Shown one piece after another: positions 47,263 to 54,829 of a stretch of 64,000 nt of DNA (the stretch's first letter is position 1; each line of letters opens with the position of its first letter). The stretch is from Rebecca billardiae RCC1528 (Eukaryota > Protista > Haptophyta): assembly GCA_965240325.2 (NCBI GenBank), contig OZ251228.1:620001-684000 (forward strand), given 5' to 3'. Under the pieces are notes generated by a model, which worked only from the letters and a program-made list of their open reading frames with translations, ran no database searches and had not been told where the DNA came from. The position numbers and the translations under genes are program-made.

Positions 47263-50200
47263 CTAGCTGTGCGCCGGCGCACGGCGCAGCATGCGCGCCA
47301 GGTCGGCGTGGCCGTTGGCGTCGGCAACGTCAGCGGCCGTCCGACCCTCCACGTCGGCCGCGGCCGCGTCCGCTCCGCGCTCGAGCAGCAGCGCGGCGAT
47401 GGCGGCGTCGTTGCGCATGGCGGCGACGTGGAGCGCAGTGCCGCCTCGCCCGGCGTCGGCGTCCTGCCCGGCACGCGCGTCCGCGGGCACGCCGGCGCGC
47501 AGCAGCGCGTTGCACGCGGCCGCAAGGCCACGCGCCGCCGCGAGCGGCAGCAGCGACGGCTCGGCGCACGCGGCGTGTGGCGCGGCGTCGGCGATGGCTG
47601 CAGCAGCTTCGGCGTGCCCGTGCGCGATGGCGAGGCGCAGCGCGCTGTCGGGCGCTCCAGCGATCTCCACTGCTGGTGCGCCCTGCCCTCCGGCAGCAGC
47701 CGTGCCGCTGCCATCCCGGTGCACCTCGCCCGCACCAGCGCTCGCGCGTGCGGCGGCGGCGCTCTCGGGCAGCGGCTGCGCGCCAGCCAGCAGCAGCAGG
47801 CGGCAGACGGCTGCATGGCCGCGCCGCGCGGTGTGCCCGCCCCTGCAGGCTGCCATCAGCGCGGTGGTGCCGTCCCGCTTGGCGCCCGTCAAGTCCGCGC
47901 CCGCCTTGAGCAGCGCGGACACGCATGCGGTGTGCCCGCCCCCGCAGGCGAGCATCAGCGCGGTGGTGCCGTCCCACTTGGCGTGTGCCACGTCTGCGCC
48001 CGCCTTGAGCAGCGCGGACACGCATGCGGTGTGCCCGCCCCCGCAGGCGAGCATCAGCGCGGTGGTGCCGTCCCGCTTGGCGAGTGCCACGTCTGCGCCC
48101 GCCTCGAGCAGCGCAGACACGCATGCGGTGTGCCCGCCCCCGCAGGCGAGCATCAGCGCGGTGGTGCCATCCCGCTTGGCGCCCGCCACGTCTGCGCCCG
48201 CCTTGAGCAGCGCGGACACGCATGCTTTGTGCCCGCCCCCGCAGGCGAGCATCAGCGCGGTGGTGCCGTCCCACTTGGCGCCCGTCAAGTCCGCGCCCGC
48301 CTTGCGCAGCGCGGACACGCATGCTTTGTGCCCGCCCCCGCAGGCGAGCATCAGCGCGGTGGTGCCGTCCCGCTTGGCGTGTGCCACGTCTGCGCCCGCC
48401 TTGAGCAGCGCGGACACGCATGCGGTGTGCCCGCCCCCGCAGGCGAGCATCAGCGCGGTGGTGCCGTCCCGCTTGGCGCCCGCCACGTCTGCGCCCGCCT
48501 CGAGCAGCGCAGACATGCATGCGGTGTGCCCGCCCCCGCAGGCGAGCATCAGCGCGGTGGTGCCGTCCCGCTTGGCGCCCGCCACGTCTGCGCCCGCCTC
48601 GAGCAGCGCAGACATGCATGCGGTGTGCCCGCCCCCGCAGGCGAGCATCAGCGCGGTGGTGCCGTCCCGCTTGGCGTGTGCCACGTCTGCGCCCGCCTCG
48701 AGCAGCGCAGACATGCATGCGGTGTGCCCGCCCCCGCAGGCGAGCATCAGCGCGGTGGTGCCGTCCCGCTTGGCGCCCGCCACGTCTGCGCCCGCCTCGA
48801 GCAGCGCAGACACGCATGCGGTGTGCCCGCCCCCGCAGGCGAGCATCAGCGCGGTGGTGCCGTCCCGCTTGGCGCCCGCCACGTCTGCGCCCGCCTCGAG
48901 CAGCGCAGACATGCATGCTTTGTGCCCGCCCCCGCAGGCGAGCATCAGCGCGGTGGTGCCGTCCCGCTTGGCGCCCGCCACGTCTGCGCCCGCCTCGAGC
49001 AGCGCAGACATGCATGCGGCGTGCCCGCCCCCGCAGGCGAGCATCAGCGCGGTGGTGCCGTCCCGCTTGGCGCCCGCCACGTCCGCGCCCGAGTCGAGCA
49101 GCGCGGACACGCATGTGGCGTGCCCGTGTTGGCAGGCGCGCATCAGCGCGGTGAAGCCGTCCTGATCGGCCAGCGCGACGTCCGCGCCCGCCTCGAGCAG
49201 CGCGGGCACGCATGCTGTGCGCCCGCCACTGCAGGCGAGCATCAGTGCAGTGGAGCCGTCCTGCCTGGCGTACACCGCGTTAGCGCCCGCCTCGAGCAGC
49301 GCGGACACGCATGCTGCGTGCCCGTACATGCAGGCGAGCATCAGCGCAGTGGTGCCATTCTGCTTGGCGTGCGCCACGTCTGCGCCCGCCTCGGACAGCG
49401 CGGACACGCATGCTGCGTGGCCGTACATGCAGGCGAGCATCAGCACGCTGAAGCCGTCCTGCCTGGCGTGCGCCACGTCCGCGCCAGCCTCTAGCAGCGC
49501 GGACACGCATGCGGCGTGCCCGCTCTGGCAGGCGAGCATCAGCGCGGTGAAGCCGTCCTCATCGGCGTGCGCCACGTCCGCGCCAGCCTCAAGCAGCGCG
49601 GACACGCATGCGGCGTGCCCGCTCTGGCAGGCGAGCATCAGCGCGGTGAAGCCGTCCTCATCGGCGTGCGCCACGTCCGCGCCCGCCTCGAGCAGCGTGG
49701 GCACCAGTGCGGTGTGCCCGTAGATGCAGGCCAGCATCAGCGCAGTGCGGCCCTTCTGATCGACGGGCGCCACGTCTGCGCCCTTCTCGAGCAGCGCGGA
49801 CACGCCTGCTGTGTCCCCGTTCAGGCAGGCGAGCATCAGCGCGGTGTGGCCGTGCTGATCGGCGTGCGCCACGTCCGCGTCAGCCTCGAACAGCGCGGAC
49901 ACACATGCGGTGTGCCCGCCGCTGCAGGCGCGCATCAGCGCGGTGGCGCCGTCCTGATCGGCGTGCGCCGCGTCCGCGCCCGCCTCGAGCAGCGCGGACA
50001 CACATGCGGTGTGCCTGCCCCCGTGGGCGAGCATCAGCGCGGTGGTGCCGTTCTGCGTGGCGTGCGCCACGTCCGCGCCCGCCTCGAGCAGCGCGGACAC
50101 GCATGCGGTGTGCCCCTTGTAGCAGGCGAGCATCAGCGCGGTGGCGCCGCGCTGATCGGCGTGCGCCACGTCCGCGCCCGCCTCGAGCAGCGCGGACACG

Positions 50201-53200
50201 CATGCAGCGTGCCCGCCCCTGCAGGCGTGCCTCAGCGCGGTGGTGCCGTCCTGCGTGGCGCCCGCCACGTCCGCGCCCGCCTCGAGCAGCGCGGACATGC
50301 ATGCGGTGTGCCCGCCCCCGCAAGCGAGCATCAGCGCGGTGGTGCCGTCCCGCTTGGCGTGTGCCACGTCTGCGCCCGCCTTGAGCAGCGCGGACACGCA
50401 TGCGGTGTGCCCGCCCCCGCAGGCGAGCATCAGCGCGGTGGTGCCGTCCCGCTTGGCGCCCGTCAAGTCCGCGCCCGCCTTGAGCAGCGCAGACACGCAT
50501 GCGGCGTGCCCGCCCCCGCAGGCGAGCATCAGCGCGGTGGTGCCGTCCCACTTGGCGTGTGCCACGTCTGCGCCCGCCTTGAGCAGCGCGGACACGCATG
50601 CGGTGTGCCCGCCCCCGCAGGCGAGCATCAGCGCGGTGTGGTCGAACCCATTGGCGTGTGACACGTCCGCGCCCGCCTCGAGCAGCGCGGACACGCATGC
50701 GGCGTGCCCCCTCTGGCAGGCGAGCGTCAGCGCGGTGTGGCCGAACCAATTGGCGTGTGACACGTCCGCGCCCGCGTCGAGCAGCGCGGACACGCATGCA
50801 GCGTGCCCGAGCAGGCTTGCACGCGTCAGCACCGGCAATCCTCCCGCGTCCTCGAACCCGACATCCGCGCCATGCCGCGCGAGCAGCGTGGCACACTCGG
50901 CGTGCCCTTGCTTGCATGCGCGCTCCAGCGCTGCAGACGCGTGCGCGCGCGCCTCCGCGCCCCCGCCTGCTCGCGCCCTCACGCCCTCGTGCGCTGCGCA
51001 GATGCCCGCCGCCTCCACCAGCCGCGAAGGAAGCTCGCTCGCGTCAGGCTCGTCTCGCAGCATGCGCAGCAGGTACTGGCACGCCTCGTACAGCTGCCCG
51101 CTCGCCTCACGCGTCTCAGCCTCGCCTGTCTCCCCCGACGCGTCCGCGCCGCTCACCAGACCGCTCCTGAGCTGCGTGATGAACGCCCGCGGCTTGGCCG
51201 CGCAGCTCTCGGGCAGCGGCAGCTCGCCAGCGCCGAGCGCGCGCTCGACCGCGTCGCGCAGCGCGCTGAGCTGCTCGTGCCCGTACCGCGCCGCCAGCTG
51301 GCGCAGCCGCCACACGCCGAGCACGAGCCGCCCGCGCGCGCGCCCCTCCTTGCGCACGTGCAGTCCTGCAAGCTCAGTCTGCGTCGCCTCGGCCGTCAGC
51401 CAGTCCGCGAGCGACTGGTGGTATATGCGCAGCGGCGCGTCGGCGCGCGGGCCGGCGGCGCCCATCGGTGGCGTGCGCGGTGGCGTCGCGCCGTCGCGCT
51501 TGCCGTCGCCCTCGCCCTCGGCCACCTCGACCACGAAGCCAGAAAGCGCGCGCAGCTGCTTGCTCAGCTCGTCCTCGCCCTCGTCGCCCGAGTAGCTCGG
51601 GTACACGCCGCGCAGCGCCTCGAGCAGCTCGGCGCGCGAGAGCGGCGCGTGCGCGACAAGCATCAGCTCGAGCACGGTGCGCACGCCCTTGCGCTCCGCC
51701 TCAGTCGGCAGCGCGCGCTTGAGCGACTCGTTGTACAGCCGCTCGAGGCCGTGCGGCAGCGTTGCGAGGTCGGCCAGCGTGATCCGCCCGCTGCCGAGCT
51801 GCTCGATGGCCTGCGTGGCGTACATGAAGTTGCCGCCGCACGCCTCGCTCAGCTCGTGCGCCGCTCGCTCGAGCTCGTCGGGCGCAGGCGCGGCCACCTC
51901 ACGCGCGCGGCGCGCGTACGCCTCGAGCCGCGCGCGCACGAACGCGGCGGCGTCGGCGCGGTCGTCGTCCGCGTCCACGTCGAGTCGCTCGCGCGGCATC
52001 TCGTTGAGCGGCGCGAGCACTGCGTGCTCGGGGCGCGAGGACGCCAAGATTCGCAGCCAGTTGGGCAGCGTCTTGTGCTGCGAGACCGTTGCGAGGATGT
52101 CGGCGATCGAGTGCGAGCTGCCCTGCACGTGCCGCGCCTCGTCGAGCGAGTCGATCGCGAGCAGCATCGTCTTGCGCGGCGCGGCGGATGGCGGGATGTT
52201 GCGCAGCGGCGCGAGCACAAGTCGCTCGAACGCGCTCGGCCCGTCCTCGCGGTCGTCGAGCGCGAGCTCGCCGCCCTTCTTGCGCAGCTTGGCCTCGCGC
52301 AGCTGCGCGCCGTATGCAGGCAGCGCGTGCCGCAGCTGCAGCGAGATGTTGCGCACAAACGACGAGGGCAGCAGCCAGTCGTGGTACGCCGCCGAGCACA
52401 CGTGCTGGCCGAGCACGCGCTCGTGCGCCGCGATCGAGCCGTCGTCGCACTGCACGAGCTGCGCGAGCAGCGCCGACTTGCCCGTGCCCGGCCCGCCCAC
52501 GACGAGCAGCACCGGCTCCGCGCGAGCATCTGCCGCCCACGCCTCGATGCGCCTGAGCGGCGCGTCGCGCCCCACAAAGTGCTTCCGCTTCGTGCTCATG
52601 AATTTGGCGAAGGCGTCATTCAGCGGCGGCGGCGGGGCCGCGTCCCCGGCAGATGAGCGCCGCTGCTGCCGCTGCGCCACATAGAAGCTGTCAAACTTCT
52701 CGTGAAGGCCGTCGACCTTGCTCGCCACGCCGCCGACCTTGCTCTCCACGCCGTCGAGCTTGCTCTCCAGCCGCGCCGTCACCTCGCCAAGCAGCAGCTC
52801 GAGACGGTTGGCGCGCACGTCCGCGCTCGCGTCGAGCTCGTCGGCAAACGTCTTGAGTGCCGACTCGAGCTCGTCGTCGCTCGCGCCGCGCTCGCGCAGC
52901 TGCTCGATGGCCGCGCGCTGCGCCTCGAGCGCCGCGCCGAGGCGCTCGAGCTGCTCGAACGTGCCCACCGCGAGCCGCTGCGCCGCGCGCTCCGCCGTCG
53001 CGTTCACGCGCGCCATCGCCGCCTCAATCGCCTCCGCGCGCTCGCGCAGCTCGCTGGCGTCGCGCTGCGTGCCTAGCAGCAGCTTGATGAAGCCGCGCTC
53101 GCAGAAGGCGGCCAGGCTCTCCGCCGCGGCTTCCACCGCGGCCGTGAGCTCGTCTGCGTCCTGCTTGAGCGGCTCCACCAGCCTCTGCTTGCTCGGCGGC

Positions 53201-53949
53201 CACTCGCCCATGTACGCGAGAACCTCCGCCATCTCCGCGACTGTCCGGAGCAGCAGGTCACCGAGCTCGCGCGCCGCCTGCCGGTTGGCGTACACGCCAT
53301 GCACGCGCTCGAGGGCGACCGAGCACGCGCCGAAGAGCAGGCTGAGCGCCTCGTCGAGTGGCCACGGCACGACCGGCATGAGCCGCAGCACGGCGTCCGC
53401 AGCTCCGCGCGCCATGTCGAGAAGCTCGGGCGCCTGCGCCTCCGCGTGCGCAACGAGATTGTCGCCCAGCTCGCGCACGCTCGCGTGCAGCCGCGGCGCG
53501 AGTTCCTCGGCCTCGCCAGACTTGGTCTGCACGCCGAGCTGCGCAGCGAGCGCGGTGTCGACGGCGTTGTTGGTCTCGACCACCACCTCGTCAACCGTCG
53601 GTGCGGCATGCTCGGCCGCGGCGGGCGCGGCGGCGGGCGCGGCGGCGGGCGCGGCAGCGGGCGAGGCGGCGGGCGAGGCGGCGGGCGGGGCGGCGGGTGG
53701 CTCGAGCGTGTCACCGCGCGATGACACAGCATCGCGCGAGCCGTCTGGCGAGCGGGCAAGCTCATCCGCCGATTCCTGCCAGGCCTGGCGTGCGGGCGGC
53801 GCCGGCCCGGCCGAACGTGCGCCGGCGAGCTGCGCTGCTGCAGCGGCACTGGTCCCGGGTGTCGTTGGTGCGGCGGGGCTCTGGACGGGCGCCACACCTG
53901 CGGCCGGCTCGGGCTCGACACGTCGCCGGGACGACGCGCCGCAACCCAT
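47263..53949 (-). CDS. NLR-like STAND protein: MGCGAS acylation motif, MLKL/HeLo-like helical bundle, coiled coil, NACHT (NPHP3/TANC-like), ~35 ankyrin repeats; intronless, 2228 aa
   Basis: ATG 53949 MGCGASS; FVGR...VLLVVGGPGTGKSALL (Walker A, 52474-52497); LLAIDSLDE (Walker B); GNFMYA; YHQSLADWL; GxTALMLACxxGHxACVSALLEAGADV repeats. Confidence 0.9.
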   Translation of the reverse strand: MGCGASSRRRVEPEPAAGVAPVQSPAAPTTPGTSAAAAAQLAGARSAGPAPPARQAWQESADELARSPDGSRDAVSSRGDTLEPPAAPPAASPAASPAAAPAAAPAAAPAAAEHAAPTVDEVVVETNNAVDTALAAQLGVQTKSGEAEELAPRLHASVRELGDNLVAHAEAQAPELLDMARGAADAVLRLMPVVPWPLDEALSLLFGACSVALERVHGVYANRQAARELGDLLLRTVAEMAEVLAYMGEWPPSKQRLVEPLKQDADELTAAVEAAAESLAAFCERGFIKLLLGTQRDASELRERAEAIEAAMARVNATAERAAQRLAVGTFEQLERLGAALEAQRAAIEQLRERGASDDELESALKTFADELDASADVRANRLELLLGEVTARLESKLDGVESKVGGVASKVDGLHEKFDSFYVAQRQQRRSSAGDAAPPPPLNDAFAKFMSTKRKHFVGRDAPLRRIEAWAADARAEPVLLVVGGPGTGKSALLAQLVQCDDGSIAAHERVLGQHVCSAAYHDWLLPSSFVRNISLQLRHALPAYGAQLREAKLRKKGGELALDDREDGPSAFERLVLAPLRNIPPSAAPRKTMLLAIDSLDEARHVQGSSHSIADILATVSQHKTLPNWLRILASSRPEHAVLAPLNEMPRERLDVDADDDRADAAAFVRARLEAYARRAREVAAPAPDELERAAHELSEACGGNFMYATQAIEQLGSGRITLADLATLPHGLERLYNESLKRALPTEAERKGVRTVLELMLVAHAPLSRAELLEALRGVYPSYSGDEGEDELSKQLRALSGFVVEVAEGEGDGKRDGATPPRTPPMGAAGPRADAPLRIYHQSLADWLTAEATQTELAGLHVRKEGRARGRLVLGVWRLRQLAARYGHEQLSALRDAVERALGAGELPLPESCAAKPRAFITQLRSGLVSGADASGETGEAETREASGQLYEACQYLLRMLRDEPDASELPSRLVEAAGICAAHEGVRARAGGGAEARAHASAALERACKQGHAECATLLARHGADVGFEDAGGLPVLTRASLLGHAACVSALLDAGADVSHANWFGHTALTLACQRGHAACVSALLEAGADVSHANGFDHTALMLACGGGHTACVSALLKAGADVAHAKWDGTTALMLACGGGHAACVSALLKAGADLTGAKRDGTTALMLACGGGHTACVSALLKAGADVAHAKRDGTTALMLACGGGHTACMSALLEAGADVAGATQDGTTALRHACRGGHAACVSALLEAGADVAHADQRGATALMLACYKGHTACVSALLEAGADVAHATQNGTTALMLAHGGRHTACVSALLEAGADAAHADQDGATALMRACSGGHTACVSALFEADADVAHADQHGHTALMLACLNGDTAGVSALLEKGADVAPVDQKGRTALMLACIYGHTALVPTLLEAGADVAHADEDGFTALMLACQSGHAACVSALLEAGADVAHADEDGFTALMLACQSGHAACVSALLEAGADVAHARQDGFSVLMLACMYGHAACVSALSEAGADVAHAKQNGTTALMLACMYGHAACVSALLEAGANAVYARQDGSTALMLACSGGRTACVPALLEAGADVALADQDGFTALMRACQHGHATCVSALLDSGADVAGAKRDGTTALMLACGGGHAACMSALLEAGADVAGAKRDGTTALMLACGGGHKACMSALLEAGADVAGAKRDGTTALMLACGGGHTACVSALLEAGADVAGAKRDGTTALMLACGGGHTACMSALLEAGADVAHAKRDGTTALMLACGGGHTACMSALLEAGADVAGAKRDGTTALMLACGGGHTACMSALLEAGADVAGAKRDGTTALMLACGGGHTACVSALLKAGADVAHAKRDGTTALMLACGGGHKACVSALRKAGADLTGAKWDGTTALMLACGGGHKACVSALLKAGADVAGAKRDGTTALMLACGGGHTACVSALLEAGADVALAKRDGTTALMLACGGGHTACVSALLKAGADVAHAKWDGTTALMLACGGGHTACVSALLKAGADLTGAKRDGTTALMAACRGGHTARRGHAAVCRLLLLAGAQPLPESAAAARASAGAGEVHRDGSGTAAAGGQGAPAVEIAGAPDSALRLAIAHGHAEAAAAIADAAPHAACAEPSLLPLAAARGLAAACNALLRAGVPADARAGQDADAGRGGTALHVAAMRNDAAIAALLLERGADAAAADVEGRTAADVADANGHADLARMLRRAPAHS
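47830..50820 (-). repeat. ~30 highly similar 99-bp ankyrin-coding repeats
   Basis: GCAGGCGAGCATCAGCGCGGTGGTGCCGTCC recurs with a 99-bp period. Confidence 0.95.
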
Positions 53950-54829
53950 GCCTCGCGGTGTTGCCCTTCTCGTGCACCCTCGTCGGCTGCGATTCGCGGG
54001 GCTGGTGATCAAGACCTCATCAAGCGTTTTCACGCGTGCACCGGACTGGAAGTGAGTAACGACTTCATCAGTCCAAGGATGGCAAGTTGTACGTAGGATT
54101 ATGAATAATGCTCGGATTCCGCTACTGCCTTTGTATCCATACGTACAGTAATCTACAATTAGTACAGCACGTTGAAACATAGTAAACAGTAACTGTACAG
54201 TACGGAGGGACGGTATCTCGATCTCGTTCGTCAACGACCTCTAACACTTCGTCCGGCCGGCTTGGCCCAAAACGACGAAGAACGACGACGACGGTGCCTC
54301 CGTTCGGCCGCCGGGGCGTATGGCACGAGACGGGCGCGCGCGGCGCTGACGTGCTCCCAAAACAGCGCCTACTGTAGGTTGTGGATTCGGCTGCCGCCGC
54401 GCCGCTGCCGAGCCCGCCGGGTGCTCTCGTCTTCTTCAGTCCGATCAGTGGCCGAATGGAAAGCCCGCGCCGCACGAGGTACGCGAGGGGCGCGAGGAAA
54501 TTTTCCTCGGATGTTAAGGTTTAGATCGGATGTCGAGCCTGTCGAGCCCTCACCGATACGTAAGGCTTTTGAAACATCCGCGAAAGCGTCCCCAGCCCCA
54601 GCAGGCAGACAGAGCGCGCGCCGTGACGAAAGTGCGCATTCCAACAGACCCAAGTAATAGTGCCAGCTAAGACCTAAGTGCATCGTTGGCTGGTCGCGCA
54701 GCCCGTTTGCGATCACAGGGTCACTGAACCGTCGCCCGAGGCCGATTCGAGAGCAGTTCTGACGAGATTTTGCTTAAGACGATGGGCCCGTTTGCATGTT
54801 GGGCGCAGGAGGACATGGCTCCCGTAACT

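Follow-up and report, generated by a model that had tools for sequence, protein, structure and literature searches.

The window that we analysed, a stretch of 64,000 nucleotides from the very GC-rich haptophyte alga Rebecca billardiae RCC1528, carries on its minus strand a gene (47263-53949) that joins a helical N-terminus and a NACHT-clade NTPase to about 34 ankyrin repeats, the array of which we read, with a probability of roughly 0.7, as the sensor of an NLR-like STAND protein of the HIC (highly internally conserved) type, whose units are duplicated, lost, and recombined and whose contact residues evolve fast. The coding sequence (47263..53949; 2,228 codons plus stop) is apparently a single exon, as judged from an uninterrupted frame with Pfam domains along its length, and belongs to an open frame of 2,323 codons on the same strand; the GC content, 74-78%, drops to 37-51% immediately before the ATG, at 54000-54250. 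All the features described below lie on that minus strand.

Tandem Repeats Finder reported one 99-bp array (47828-50809; 30.1 copies, 89% matches, 0% indels), and by cutting the frame into 33-residue units we obtained R01-R32, in a numbering that agrees with that of the earlier note on this DNA. R01-R02 (50755..50952) are divergent leading repeats; between R02 and any other unit 25-36 of the 99 bases differ, and its nearest units are R14, R15, and R03, all of the diverse kind. The HIC array, R03-R31 (47884..50754), follows with 29 units, each exactly 99 bp long and free of indels, whose identity to their consensus is 84.6% in amino acids and 90.9% in nucleotides, which uniformity bears out the nearly constant scaffold that the earlier note had described. 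Within that array a first near-clonal block, R04-R07 (50260..50655), characterized by GGG at positions 14-16, and a second, R20-R31 (47884..49071), in which the units differ by 0-12 bases per 99 bp, enclose a diverse core, R08-R19 (49072..50259), whose units differ from one another at 12-28 of 99 bp; this core contains R14 and R15, a recent duplicate pair only a single synonymous base apart. The GGG units have a consensus identity of 92.4% in amino acids and 95.5% in nucleotides, the diverse units 81.1% and 88.4%, and identical DNA is found in R06, R26, and R30, as well as in R24 and R25. R32 (47785..47883), the degenerate last unit, starts like a unit of the GGG blocks and then diverges, with an apparent short internal partial duplication, while the C-terminal tail (47266..47784) holds two or three divergent ankyrin repeats, the best Ank_5 stretch being aa 2162-2209. 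The layout of the GGG blocks is not a matter of chance: the 16 GGG units fall into 4 runs, a number as low being reached in none of 200,000 shuffles, and adjacent units show 11.0 differences versus 14.4 in shuffled order (as low in 0 of 20,000 shuffles), so that the two near-clonal blocks around diverse units, likewise proposed beforehand from the sequence, stand as they were described.

That the repeats are ankyrins is indicated by the Pfam matches to Ank_2 (E = 3.8e-267) and Ank (E = 3.4e-167) and by phmmer, which matched DARPins as well as ankyrin-1/2 at 1e-68; a fold model of R07-R20, with a pLDDT of only 70, resembled a 12-repeat DARPin at a TM of 0.66 and also 24 repeats of AnkB. The published definition of HIC repeats calls for an identity of 85% or more across 100 aa or more, or else for a T-REKS Psim of 0.7 or higher. 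The array qualifies, with a mean consensus identity of 0.846 over 957 aa, and of 0.924 for the 16 GGG units, these figures coming from our own Psim-like measure and not from T-REKS.

The variation among units is concentrated at positions 2, 3, 4, 6, 14, 15, 18, and 33, which have the highest per-position entropy and which, though only eight of 33, account for 60% of the total entropy, that is, of the amino-acid variability. When the array was aligned by phmmer with DARPin D12 (5le2), the array position came out as the DARPin position plus 1, whereby array positions 3, 4, 6, 14, and 15 correspond to DARPin positions 2, 3, 5, 13, and 14. The three internal repeats of D12 differ at positions 2, 3, 5, 13, 14, and 33; five of the six DARPin-randomised positions are variable in the array, and the entropy at those six a priori positions exceeded that of the rest (Mann-Whitney p = 0.003). 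The earlier note had placed the variation almost only at binding-face positions, which claim stands with respect to those five positions; but the "almost only" was slightly overstated, because the array has an unvarying Ala at DARPin position 33 and is variable at DARPin positions 1, 17, and 32.

We then considered whether the amino-acid changes at those codons outnumbered what the synonymous changes would predict, as the earlier note had proposed be checked by a per-codon dN/dS across the units, and obtained values above 1 at the DARPin sites but not in the scaffold, where they were below 1. In summary form, these a priori sites had an omega of 1.9-2.0 (p = 0.004-0.007) in the codon model that is most conservative, whereas the other methods gave 2.7-4.9; the scaffold had about 0.5, which value implies a gene under constraint. 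The Nei-Gojobori procedure gave a dN of 0.60 at the six most variable codons versus a dS of 0.13 over the whole unit. Our codon-likelihood calculations, carried out with custom code validated only against the M0 model of IQ-TREE, whose lnL of -895.82 they reproduced, yielded an omega of 2.0 at the a priori sites versus 0.48 in the scaffold (LRT against omega = 1: 8.5, p = 0.0036); the a priori value became 2.7 with F61 frequencies, 1.9 (p = 0.007) with the nucleotide-tree topology, 3.8 with the scaffold-only topology, and 4.9 by a tree-free pairwise composite likelihood. M2a was preferred to M1a (LRT 14.7, p = 6e-4, omega2 = 2.4), with posteriors above 0.99 for the same eight positions, 2, 3, 4, 6, 14, 15, 18, and 33; site-model tests of this kind are known to be prone to inflation by inter-unit recombination. 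For the six a priori codons parsimony counted 50.5 non-synonymous versus 3.5 synonymous changes, 2.7-fold the synonymous rate of the whole unit (p = 4e-6). A few hypervariable binding-face positions under positive selection, as expected of HIC NLRs, are thus found at an omega of 1.9-4.9, as estimated from a single allele and with recombination among its units. Several points tell against our main reading in this regard, the possible effects of recombination and of the high GC3 on these tests included: the most conservative model puts omega no higher than about 2, and gene conversion of the scaffold together with ordinary purifying selection on the contact residues of each unit would give the same signature.

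Could the array be a recently expanded repeat whose surface positions simply drift under relaxed constraint, at an omega of about 1 and without selection for diversity, the excess arising from a depressed synonymous rate and recombination? The GC3 of the gene, at 0.90, may lower dS, and the overall omega dropped from 1.35 (Nei-Gojobori) to 0.73 with F3x4 codon frequencies, which decrease indicates that composition matters; moreover, the face codons fitted alone with free branch lengths gave a non-identifiable omega (0.58, at a tree length of 28.6). Any ankyrin family, furthermore, varies at its surface positions, and on those variable positions the design of DARPin libraries rests. Nevertheless, with shared branch lengths the a priori omega was significantly above 1 in every converged setting, the tree-free estimate was above 1 as well, the contact codons are two or three bases apart between units that differ at only 13-17% of synonymous sites, and a scaffold at an omega near 0.5 is not that of an unconstrained gene, so that we hold such drift to be quite improbable.

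With respect to the origin of the pattern, four gametes were present in 45 of the 136 informative site pairs, which mosaic structure points to recombination between units. In our main reading whole 99-bp units are gained by duplication, lost, and recombined with each other, and that recombination and turnover keep the scaffold, its synonymous sites included, nearly uniform, while amino-acid change outpaces synonymous change in the tip of the hairpin (DARPin positions 1, 2, 3, and 5), where the inner helix ends (13 and 14), and also at 17 and 32. A derived unit type, whose two contact positions on the inner helix are Gly-Gly, was recently amplified to 16 copies, in two blocks flanking an older diversified core of 12-13 units. 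We consider the Gly-Gly type as derived because R02 is nearer to the diverse units and because the units of a paralogue, C5, have no Gly-Gly at the corresponding positions in any instance; and since clonality in the GGG blocks extends to the hypervariable sites, these blocks look like the product of recent amplification of one unit type and not of diversification. Such uniformity at contact positions is, for its part, the opposite of a diversified paratope and counts against our main reading.

As to an exchange of units between genes, no other locus in the genome carries this repeat, the best outside match having about 71% nucleotide identity, and the C21 and C5 paralogues have ordinary divergent arrays in which we saw no exchange of repeats; therefore, the repeat pool shared among paralogues that the earlier note had envisaged is not borne out. 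Nor did the assembly contain a further copy that would represent a second haplotype, or the protein database and the metagenome contigs a close relative or another strain. That near-identical units had been mis-counted or collapsed, or two haplotypes merged into a chimera, might be suspected since HIC arrays are hard to assemble, according to PMC12222747; but the assembly is highly contiguous (72 Mb in 41 contigs), the array spans only 3 kb, and the frame is intact across all units, with no indels and with many substitutions that distinguish them, so that an artefact appears scarcely credible.

The remainder of the protein was next compared with the tripartite layout of effector, NOD, and repeats, in which the NOD and the repeats are clear, the N-terminal 440 residues being without a significant family match, a result that counts against our main reading. 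The first residues, MGCGAS (53932..53949), read from the sequence, match Met-Gly-x-x-x-Ser, the consensus for N-myristoylation, which acylation they might therefore undergo, with Cys3 as a possible palmitoylation site. The region of aa 110-440 (52630..53622) was all-helical in the AlphaFold model, whose pLDDT of 54 is too low for a fold to be assigned, and the Pfam search there gave nothing better than E = 0.009 (Rx_N, E = 0.82); the ESM Atlas clusters nearest to the N-terminal region carry MLKL_N at a score of 0.89, the tool's line being 0.9, and we take a possible MLKL_N/HeLo-like effector as a lead only. The NACHT-clade STAND P-loop NTPase (aa 468-639; 52033..52548) was recognized through NPHP3_N (E = 5e-10, 40.3 bits, cut-off 24.8), with AAA_16 at 37.3 bits, and through a STAND motif set, the definitions of which reportedly go back to Koonin and Aravind in 2000: Walker A (GGPGTGKS, 52474-52497), a Walker B of the form hhhhDxxDE (LLAIDSLDEA, 52135-52164), and the downstream SRP-type motif (ILASSRPE, 52027-52050), all read directly. 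The Pfam NACHT model, PF05729, had no match in the protein at E <= 0.01, and the locus is absent from the matches of that model in the genome; we propose membership of the wider NACHT clade because of the NPHP3_N match and of ESM Atlas neighbours bearing both annotations, the closest clusters, at 0.95-0.97, being fungal NACHT/NPHP3_N proteins with a het-e-1 cluster among them. Further along, a winged-helix region resembling TANC1 (51514..51711) matched HTH_TANC1 at E = 2.1e-5 and 24.8 bits, below the 27-bit cut-off; AAA_lid_TANC1 reached 12.9 bits versus a cut-off of 29.1, NPHP3_hel was likewise faint, and the Pfam search found no TPR repeats in the protein. We accordingly rejected membership in the TANC/NPHP3 family, both TANC1 models being below their cut-offs and the TPR absent. 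NPHP3 and TANC, the named relatives of the NTPase, are scaffold proteins and not immune receptors, which circumstance counts against our main reading.

The gene might, in fact, encode a structural or scaffolding STAND-ankyrin protein, comparable to TANC1/2, to NPHP3 with inversin, or to ankyrin-R/B/G, in which each repeat would bind a fixed segment of a partner, the scaffold being homogenised by concerted evolution, the unit-specific contacts kept by purifying selection, and the GGG blocks serving as a spacer or spring, with neither an arms race nor non-self recognition. NPHP3_N is indeed the best Pfam model for the NTPase, the TANC1 lid and winged helix are faintly present, and vertebrate NPHP3 is N-myristoylated too; we found only three NPHP3_N genes of this type in the genome, which number is no expanded repertoire like the fungal one; 16 units are uniform at their contact sites; and a homogenised scaffold with retained contacts also yields a high dN and a low dS. 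We nonetheless regard this alternative as unlikely, for the ESM Atlas neighbours of the NTPase are the fungal proteins mentioned above, a TANC/NPHP3-type TPR region is missing, and even within the young GGG blocks the non-synonymous changes cluster at positions 3, 18, and 33, with 3.8 at the eight variable positions versus 0.46 in the rest; in addition, few repeat proteins have HIC arrays, for which NLR-like proteins are enriched (PMC4986451, PMC13449251).

NLR-like proteins with HIC repeats have been described in fungi since 2014 (Dyrka 2014, PMC4986451) and in other lineages in 2026 (PMC13449251), HIC repeats being enriched in ATPase-bearing proteins across life and the NACHT-HIC ankyrin combination being mostly a feature of the Dikarya (PMC13449251). 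The fungal HIC ankyrin NLRs, in which the concave face is under positive selection and the number of repeats is polymorphic (PMC4986451), share with this gene a NACHT-clade NTPase and, behind it, ankyrin units that are about 85% identical to each other, hypervariable hairpin or loop and inner-helix residues on the concave face with a dN/dS above 1, and a HIC gene standing among paralogues with ordinary divergent arrays. Here, in contrast, the host is a haptophyte alga, the homogeneous units number 29-31 versus a fungal maximum of 21 (PMC4986451), large blocks are uniform even at hypervariable sites, and a single locus without a partner pool is known from one genome copy. The Podospora HET-E/HET-D/NWD proteins, with NACHT and HIC WD40 repeats, likewise combine concerted repeat evolution with few hypervariable positions that specify the ligand, and the het-e-1 cluster is among the nearest neighbours of our NTPase, but they bear a WD40 propeller in place of an open ankyrin solenoid; repeat exchange between NWD members, a trait optional for HIC NLRs, is documented there and absent here, which difference also weighs against our main reading, and RIP aids diversification in Podospora whereas it would be unexpected in this alga. 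The DARPins have the same framework and vary at positions 2, 3, 5, 13, and 14, but with TPLH where the array has TALM, with position 33 fixed as Ala and positions 1, 17, and 32 variable in the latter, and with the natural array about ten times longer. TANC1/2 and NPHP3 resemble the gene in the NPHP3_N match, in the succession of NTPase and ankyrin repeats (TANC), and in the Met-Gly start (NPHP3), but not in the TPR or in TANC models above their cut-offs; to our knowledge, the repeats of TANC and NPHP3 in animals lack such internal conservation. The brown-algal NB-ARC-TPR/LRR candidate receptors (Zambounis et al. 2012, via PMC10197012 and PMC13449251) are also algal STAND proteins whose repeats apparently diversify by unit rearrangement; there, though, each repeat is one exon, shuffled via introns and paralogues, whereas the present ankyrin repeats form one uninterrupted exon behind a NACHT-clade NTPase. 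The repeat-shuffling recognition system proposed in the earlier note is thus partly supported, by an NLR-like STAND architecture, a HIC array, a dN/dS above 1 at the DARPin sites, and mosaic units, though the paralogue pool is not, and a recognition role would follow by analogy only.

Under our main reading the concave ankyrin groove would bind a ligand, with the specificity set by the variable residues; ligand binding would free the NTPase, which would oligomerise in a nucleotide-dependent manner and so let the N-terminal domain act, possibly at a membrane. The gain, loss, and reshuffling of units may alter the specificity between individuals, as in the fungal HIC NLRs, by analogy with which an immune or non-self role might be inferred. 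A bolder proposal, which we consider possible but doubtful, is that a unicellular haptophyte has a receptor for innate immunity or non-self built like the fungal HIC NLRs, anchored in the membrane by N-terminal acylation and with an MLKL/HeLo-like death domain, whose paratope would be re-dealt between individuals by unit gain, loss, and recombination, the Gly-Gly "blank" units being a newly amplified reservoir for new specificities.

What is new here is a long HIC ankyrin NLR-like gene in an alga, a type already known from fungi and other lineages; we found no report of such a pattern for this algal lineage. HIC arrays in NLR-like proteins are a fungal route to fast receptor diversification, and a 2026 survey argues for the association across life (PMC13449251); a long example from a marine alga, with an amino-acid excess at the contact residues, supports the view of a repeated origin of this mode of evolution wherever STAND receptors meet open-ended repeats. 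The locus offers algal virologists a concrete target for strain genotyping: if strains exhibited repeat-number polymorphism, it would become a candidate for intracellular recognition in a group whose innate immunity is essentially uncharted, and otherwise would stay a sequence signature. If the immune-receptor reading were true, repeat-shuffling recognition would extend to the Haptista, and the gene would be a candidate host factor in the arms race between viruses and algae.

The minus-strand repeats form a single array at 47828–50809, for which Tandem Repeats Finder gave a period of 99, 30.1 copies, 89% matches, and no indels. We split the frame into units of 33 residues designated R01 to R32, which numbering is the same as that of the earlier note, and found R03–R31 (47884–50754) to be 84.6% identical to their own consensus as protein and 90.9% as DNA. 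The units having Gly at positions 14–16 (GGG units), namely R04–R07 and R20–R31, were 92% (protein) and 96% (DNA) identical to a consensus of their own, with R06, R26, and R30 being indistinguishable in DNA and R24 likewise from R25; whereas R08–R19 differed from one another at 12–28 per 99 bases, with the exception of R14 and R15, which pair was one synonymous base apart. The near-constant array of homogenized and diverse blocks described in the earlier note is therefore borne out. The 16 GGG units fell in 4 runs, as few runs being obtained in 0 of 200,000 shuffles, and adjacent units were more similar than under a shuffled order, so that the arrangement in blocks is clearly non-random. A mis-assembled array is a very improbable source of this pattern, since the array is 3 kb long and in-frame and the assembly is contiguous. 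At the C-terminal side, R32 (47785–47883) started like a GGG-block unit, had an apparent short in-frame partial duplication near the GH motif, and then diverged, while 47266–47784 comprised a Gly/Ala-rich linker followed by two or three old divergent ankyrin repeats at the protein end.

The whole array is contained in a minus-strand open frame at 47263–54234, in which, as judged from composition and translation, the start codon is likely to be the ATG at 53949 (first residues MGCGAS), giving a protein of 2,228 residues: the GC content is 74–78% within the gene vs 37–51% at 54000–54250, immediately upstream of that ATG, and the residues translated from upstream have a non-coding look. That 250-bp trough, against surroundings of 70–80% GC, is probably a promoter or 5′ UTR, and the open frame extends through it because stop codons are absent there by chance. 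At 70–80% GC, spurious open frames of 300–1,500 codons occur in nearly every strand and frame of the window, and ORF length by itself is no proof of a gene in this genome. The Pfam matches, for their part, identified residues 468–639 as a STAND-type P-loop NTPase (NPHP3_N, E = 5e-10, 40.3 bits, cut-off 24.8 bits; AAA_16 also matching this region), followed by a TANC1-like winged helix at 24.8 bits, under the 27-bit cut-off, and by ankyrin models from about residue 1000 to the C-terminal end (Ank_2, E = 3.8e-267). The Pfam NACHT model did not match the protein; NACHT-type motifs were visible in the sequence (Walker A GGPGTGKS, Walker B LLAIDSLDEA, and ILASSRPE), and the nearest protein-language-model neighbors of residues 440–1000 were fungal clusters annotated with both NPHP3_N and NACHT (scores 0.95–0.97), a het-e-1 cluster among them. 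Residues 1–440 comprise a Pro/Ala-rich stretch and then an all-helical region, with no significant family in Pfam searched to E <= 10; the single-sequence AlphaFold model of this region had a pLDDT of 54, too low for a fold search, and MLKL_N-bearing clusters resembled the region at 0.89 among the protein-language-model neighbors, which resemblance is a lead only by the tool's own rating.

Within the array, positions 2, 3, 4, 6, 14, 15, 18, and 33 carried 60% of the amino-acid entropy. We set the register by alignment to DARPin D12, in whose three internal repeats positions 2, 3, 5, 13, 14, and 33 can be seen to vary; an array position equals the DARPin position + 1. The proposal that variation lies at the binding face holds for five of the six randomized DARPin positions, which were hypervariable in the array, but not for the sixth: Ala is invariant here at DARPin position 33, and the array varies instead at DARPin positions 1, 17, and 32. 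A single-sequence AlphaFold model of R07–R20 (48973–50358; pLDDT 70) placed the first helix of each unit at positions 2–15, with the hairpin absorbed, which layout we distrusted, the positions being mapped by the DARPin alignment instead; the layout may reflect a hairpin truly reshaped by Gly-Gly-Gly and by TALM in place of TPLH, or else an error of the model.

By Nei–Gojobori pairwise counts, the six codons of highest variability had a dN of 0.60 vs a dS of 0.13 over the whole unit, and dN/dS was 0.74 in the scaffold, which counts overstate omega as a consequence of a GC3 of 0.90. We implemented the Goldman–Yang likelihood with F3x4 frequencies on the maximum-likelihood tree relating the 26 distinct units, and this code returned the very M0 likelihood of IQ-TREE (−895.82, omega 0.73). 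When all sites had common branch lengths, the set taken a priori from DARPins (array positions 1, 3, 4, 6, 14, and 15) gave an omega of 2.0 vs 0.48 elsewhere, the former differing from 1 in a likelihood-ratio test (LRT) of 8.5 (p = 0.0036). M2a was preferred over M1a (LRT 14.7, p = 6e-4), with a class of omega = 2.4 at 26% of sites and posteriors > 0.99 at the same eight positions that carried most of the entropy. The a priori-site omega was 2.7 with F61 frequencies, 1.9 on the nucleotide-tree topology (p = 0.007), and 3.8 on a topology from scaffold codons only, both alternative topologies being fitted with codon-model branch lengths. When the diverse units were compared in pairs by composite likelihood without a tree, a method immune to distortion by recombination between units, omega was 4.9 at the a priori sites vs 0.49. 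At the six a priori codons parsimony assigned 50.5 changes as non-synonymous and 3.5 as synonymous, a rate 2.7 times that of synonymous change over the whole unit (p = 4e-6). An IQ-TREE fit to the contact codons only with free branch lengths (omega 0.58, tree length 28.6) was discarded as carrying no information, six codons being too few to determine dS, and was replaced by the shared-branch-length models. Omega at the contact sites thus exceeds that of the scaffold four- to ten-fold, a robust difference, and is likely to lie above 1, albeit modestly under the most conservative model. Across units, dN/dS is elevated at those sites throughout the models retained (omega 1.9–4.9), so that the refuting outcome named in the earlier note, a lack of such elevation, did not occur. 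Pure relaxation combined with a compositional artefact would be an improbable cause of the contrast in view of the tree-free and shared-branch results.

As to the evolution of the array, the four gametes were all present in 45 of the 136 informative site pairs, and the GGG blocks held many combinations of the variants at positions 18, 21, 22 (synonymous), 26, 29 (synonymous), and 33, which combinations fit recombination or conversion between units, with a possible contribution from recurrent mutation. The identical distant units R06/R26/R30 and the R14/R15 pair show, on the reading of their bases, recent whole-unit duplication. Since the edge unit R02 had 25–26 differences from the diverse units vs 30–35 from the GGG units, and Gly-Gly at positions 14–15 occurred in none of the units of the paralogue on contig C5, the GGG type appears to be derived and recently amplified, and the diverse core older.

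In the genome, of 72 Mb in 41 contigs, a DNA search found the array at this locus only, with no second haplotype and no other member of the repeat family, the best match outside the locus being 71% identical. Two paralogues have the same NTPase type: C21:500022-504581 (locus L001), a 1,519-residue frame with an NPHP3_N-type NTPase, and C5:220000-224454 (L010), whose NTPase is 47% identical over 154 residues. Their ankyrin arrays are ordinary and divergent, 68–77% identical at best, and one pair of adjacent near-identical units within the C5 array points to whole-unit duplication there too. Pfam NACHT matches in several very long open frames of 1,900–3,000 codons (C10:1184123-1189843, C7:427073-427309, C3:2960480-2963137, and C32:46156-46734), one frame having two such matches, indicate further STAND genes; for those on C10, C7, C3, C32, and C21, a 10-kb stretch covering part of each gene contained no long-period array. 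At C27:1206995-1208626 (L003) several tandem arrays with periods of 117, 141, 81, and 246 bp and up to 95% matches lie beside an ankyrin-like match. The restriction of the repeat to one locus and the divergence of the paralogue arrays therefore speak against a shared repeat pool among paralogues, which part of the earlier proposal is not sustained; that proposal is thus supported in part. A scaffold of the TANC/NPHP3/ankyrin type, in which unit-specific contacts were preserved while conversion homogenized the rest, would predict the same dN/dS pattern and is favored by the uniformity of the GGG blocks and by the few members of the gene family; we consider this alternative unlikely, albeit the most probable of the rival readings.

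Beyond this genome, the N-terminal 1,000 residues had no close orthologue, one protein being found at 25% identity, nor did the ankyrin region, whose matches, in the thousands, were to generic ankyrin proteins at <= 44% identity; in metagenome contigs, a scan by exact pattern for a second strain gave two isolated matches, neither in an array. The nearest known system is that of the fungal NLRs with highly internally conserved (HIC) repeats. [quoted passage not shown] Genes with HIC repeats occur nested within groups of relatives of low internal conservation, ATPase-bearing proteins are enriched for HIC repeats across all domains of life, and the pairing of NACHT with HIC ankyrin is described as "more of a Dikarya feature" (PMC13449251), which work does not mention haptophytes, our literature searches having likewise returned no report of a haptophyte case. 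The present gene shares with the fungal HIC NLRs the internal conservation and the hypervariable sites, but not the exchange between paralogues; and whereas the hallmark of the fungal system is repeat-number polymorphism, the algal array is known from one genome copy. By analogy with the fungal system, the gene may function in recognition. What is clear, with statistical support, is that an NLR-like protein of an alga carries an HIC ankyrin array; its role in recognition is putative.
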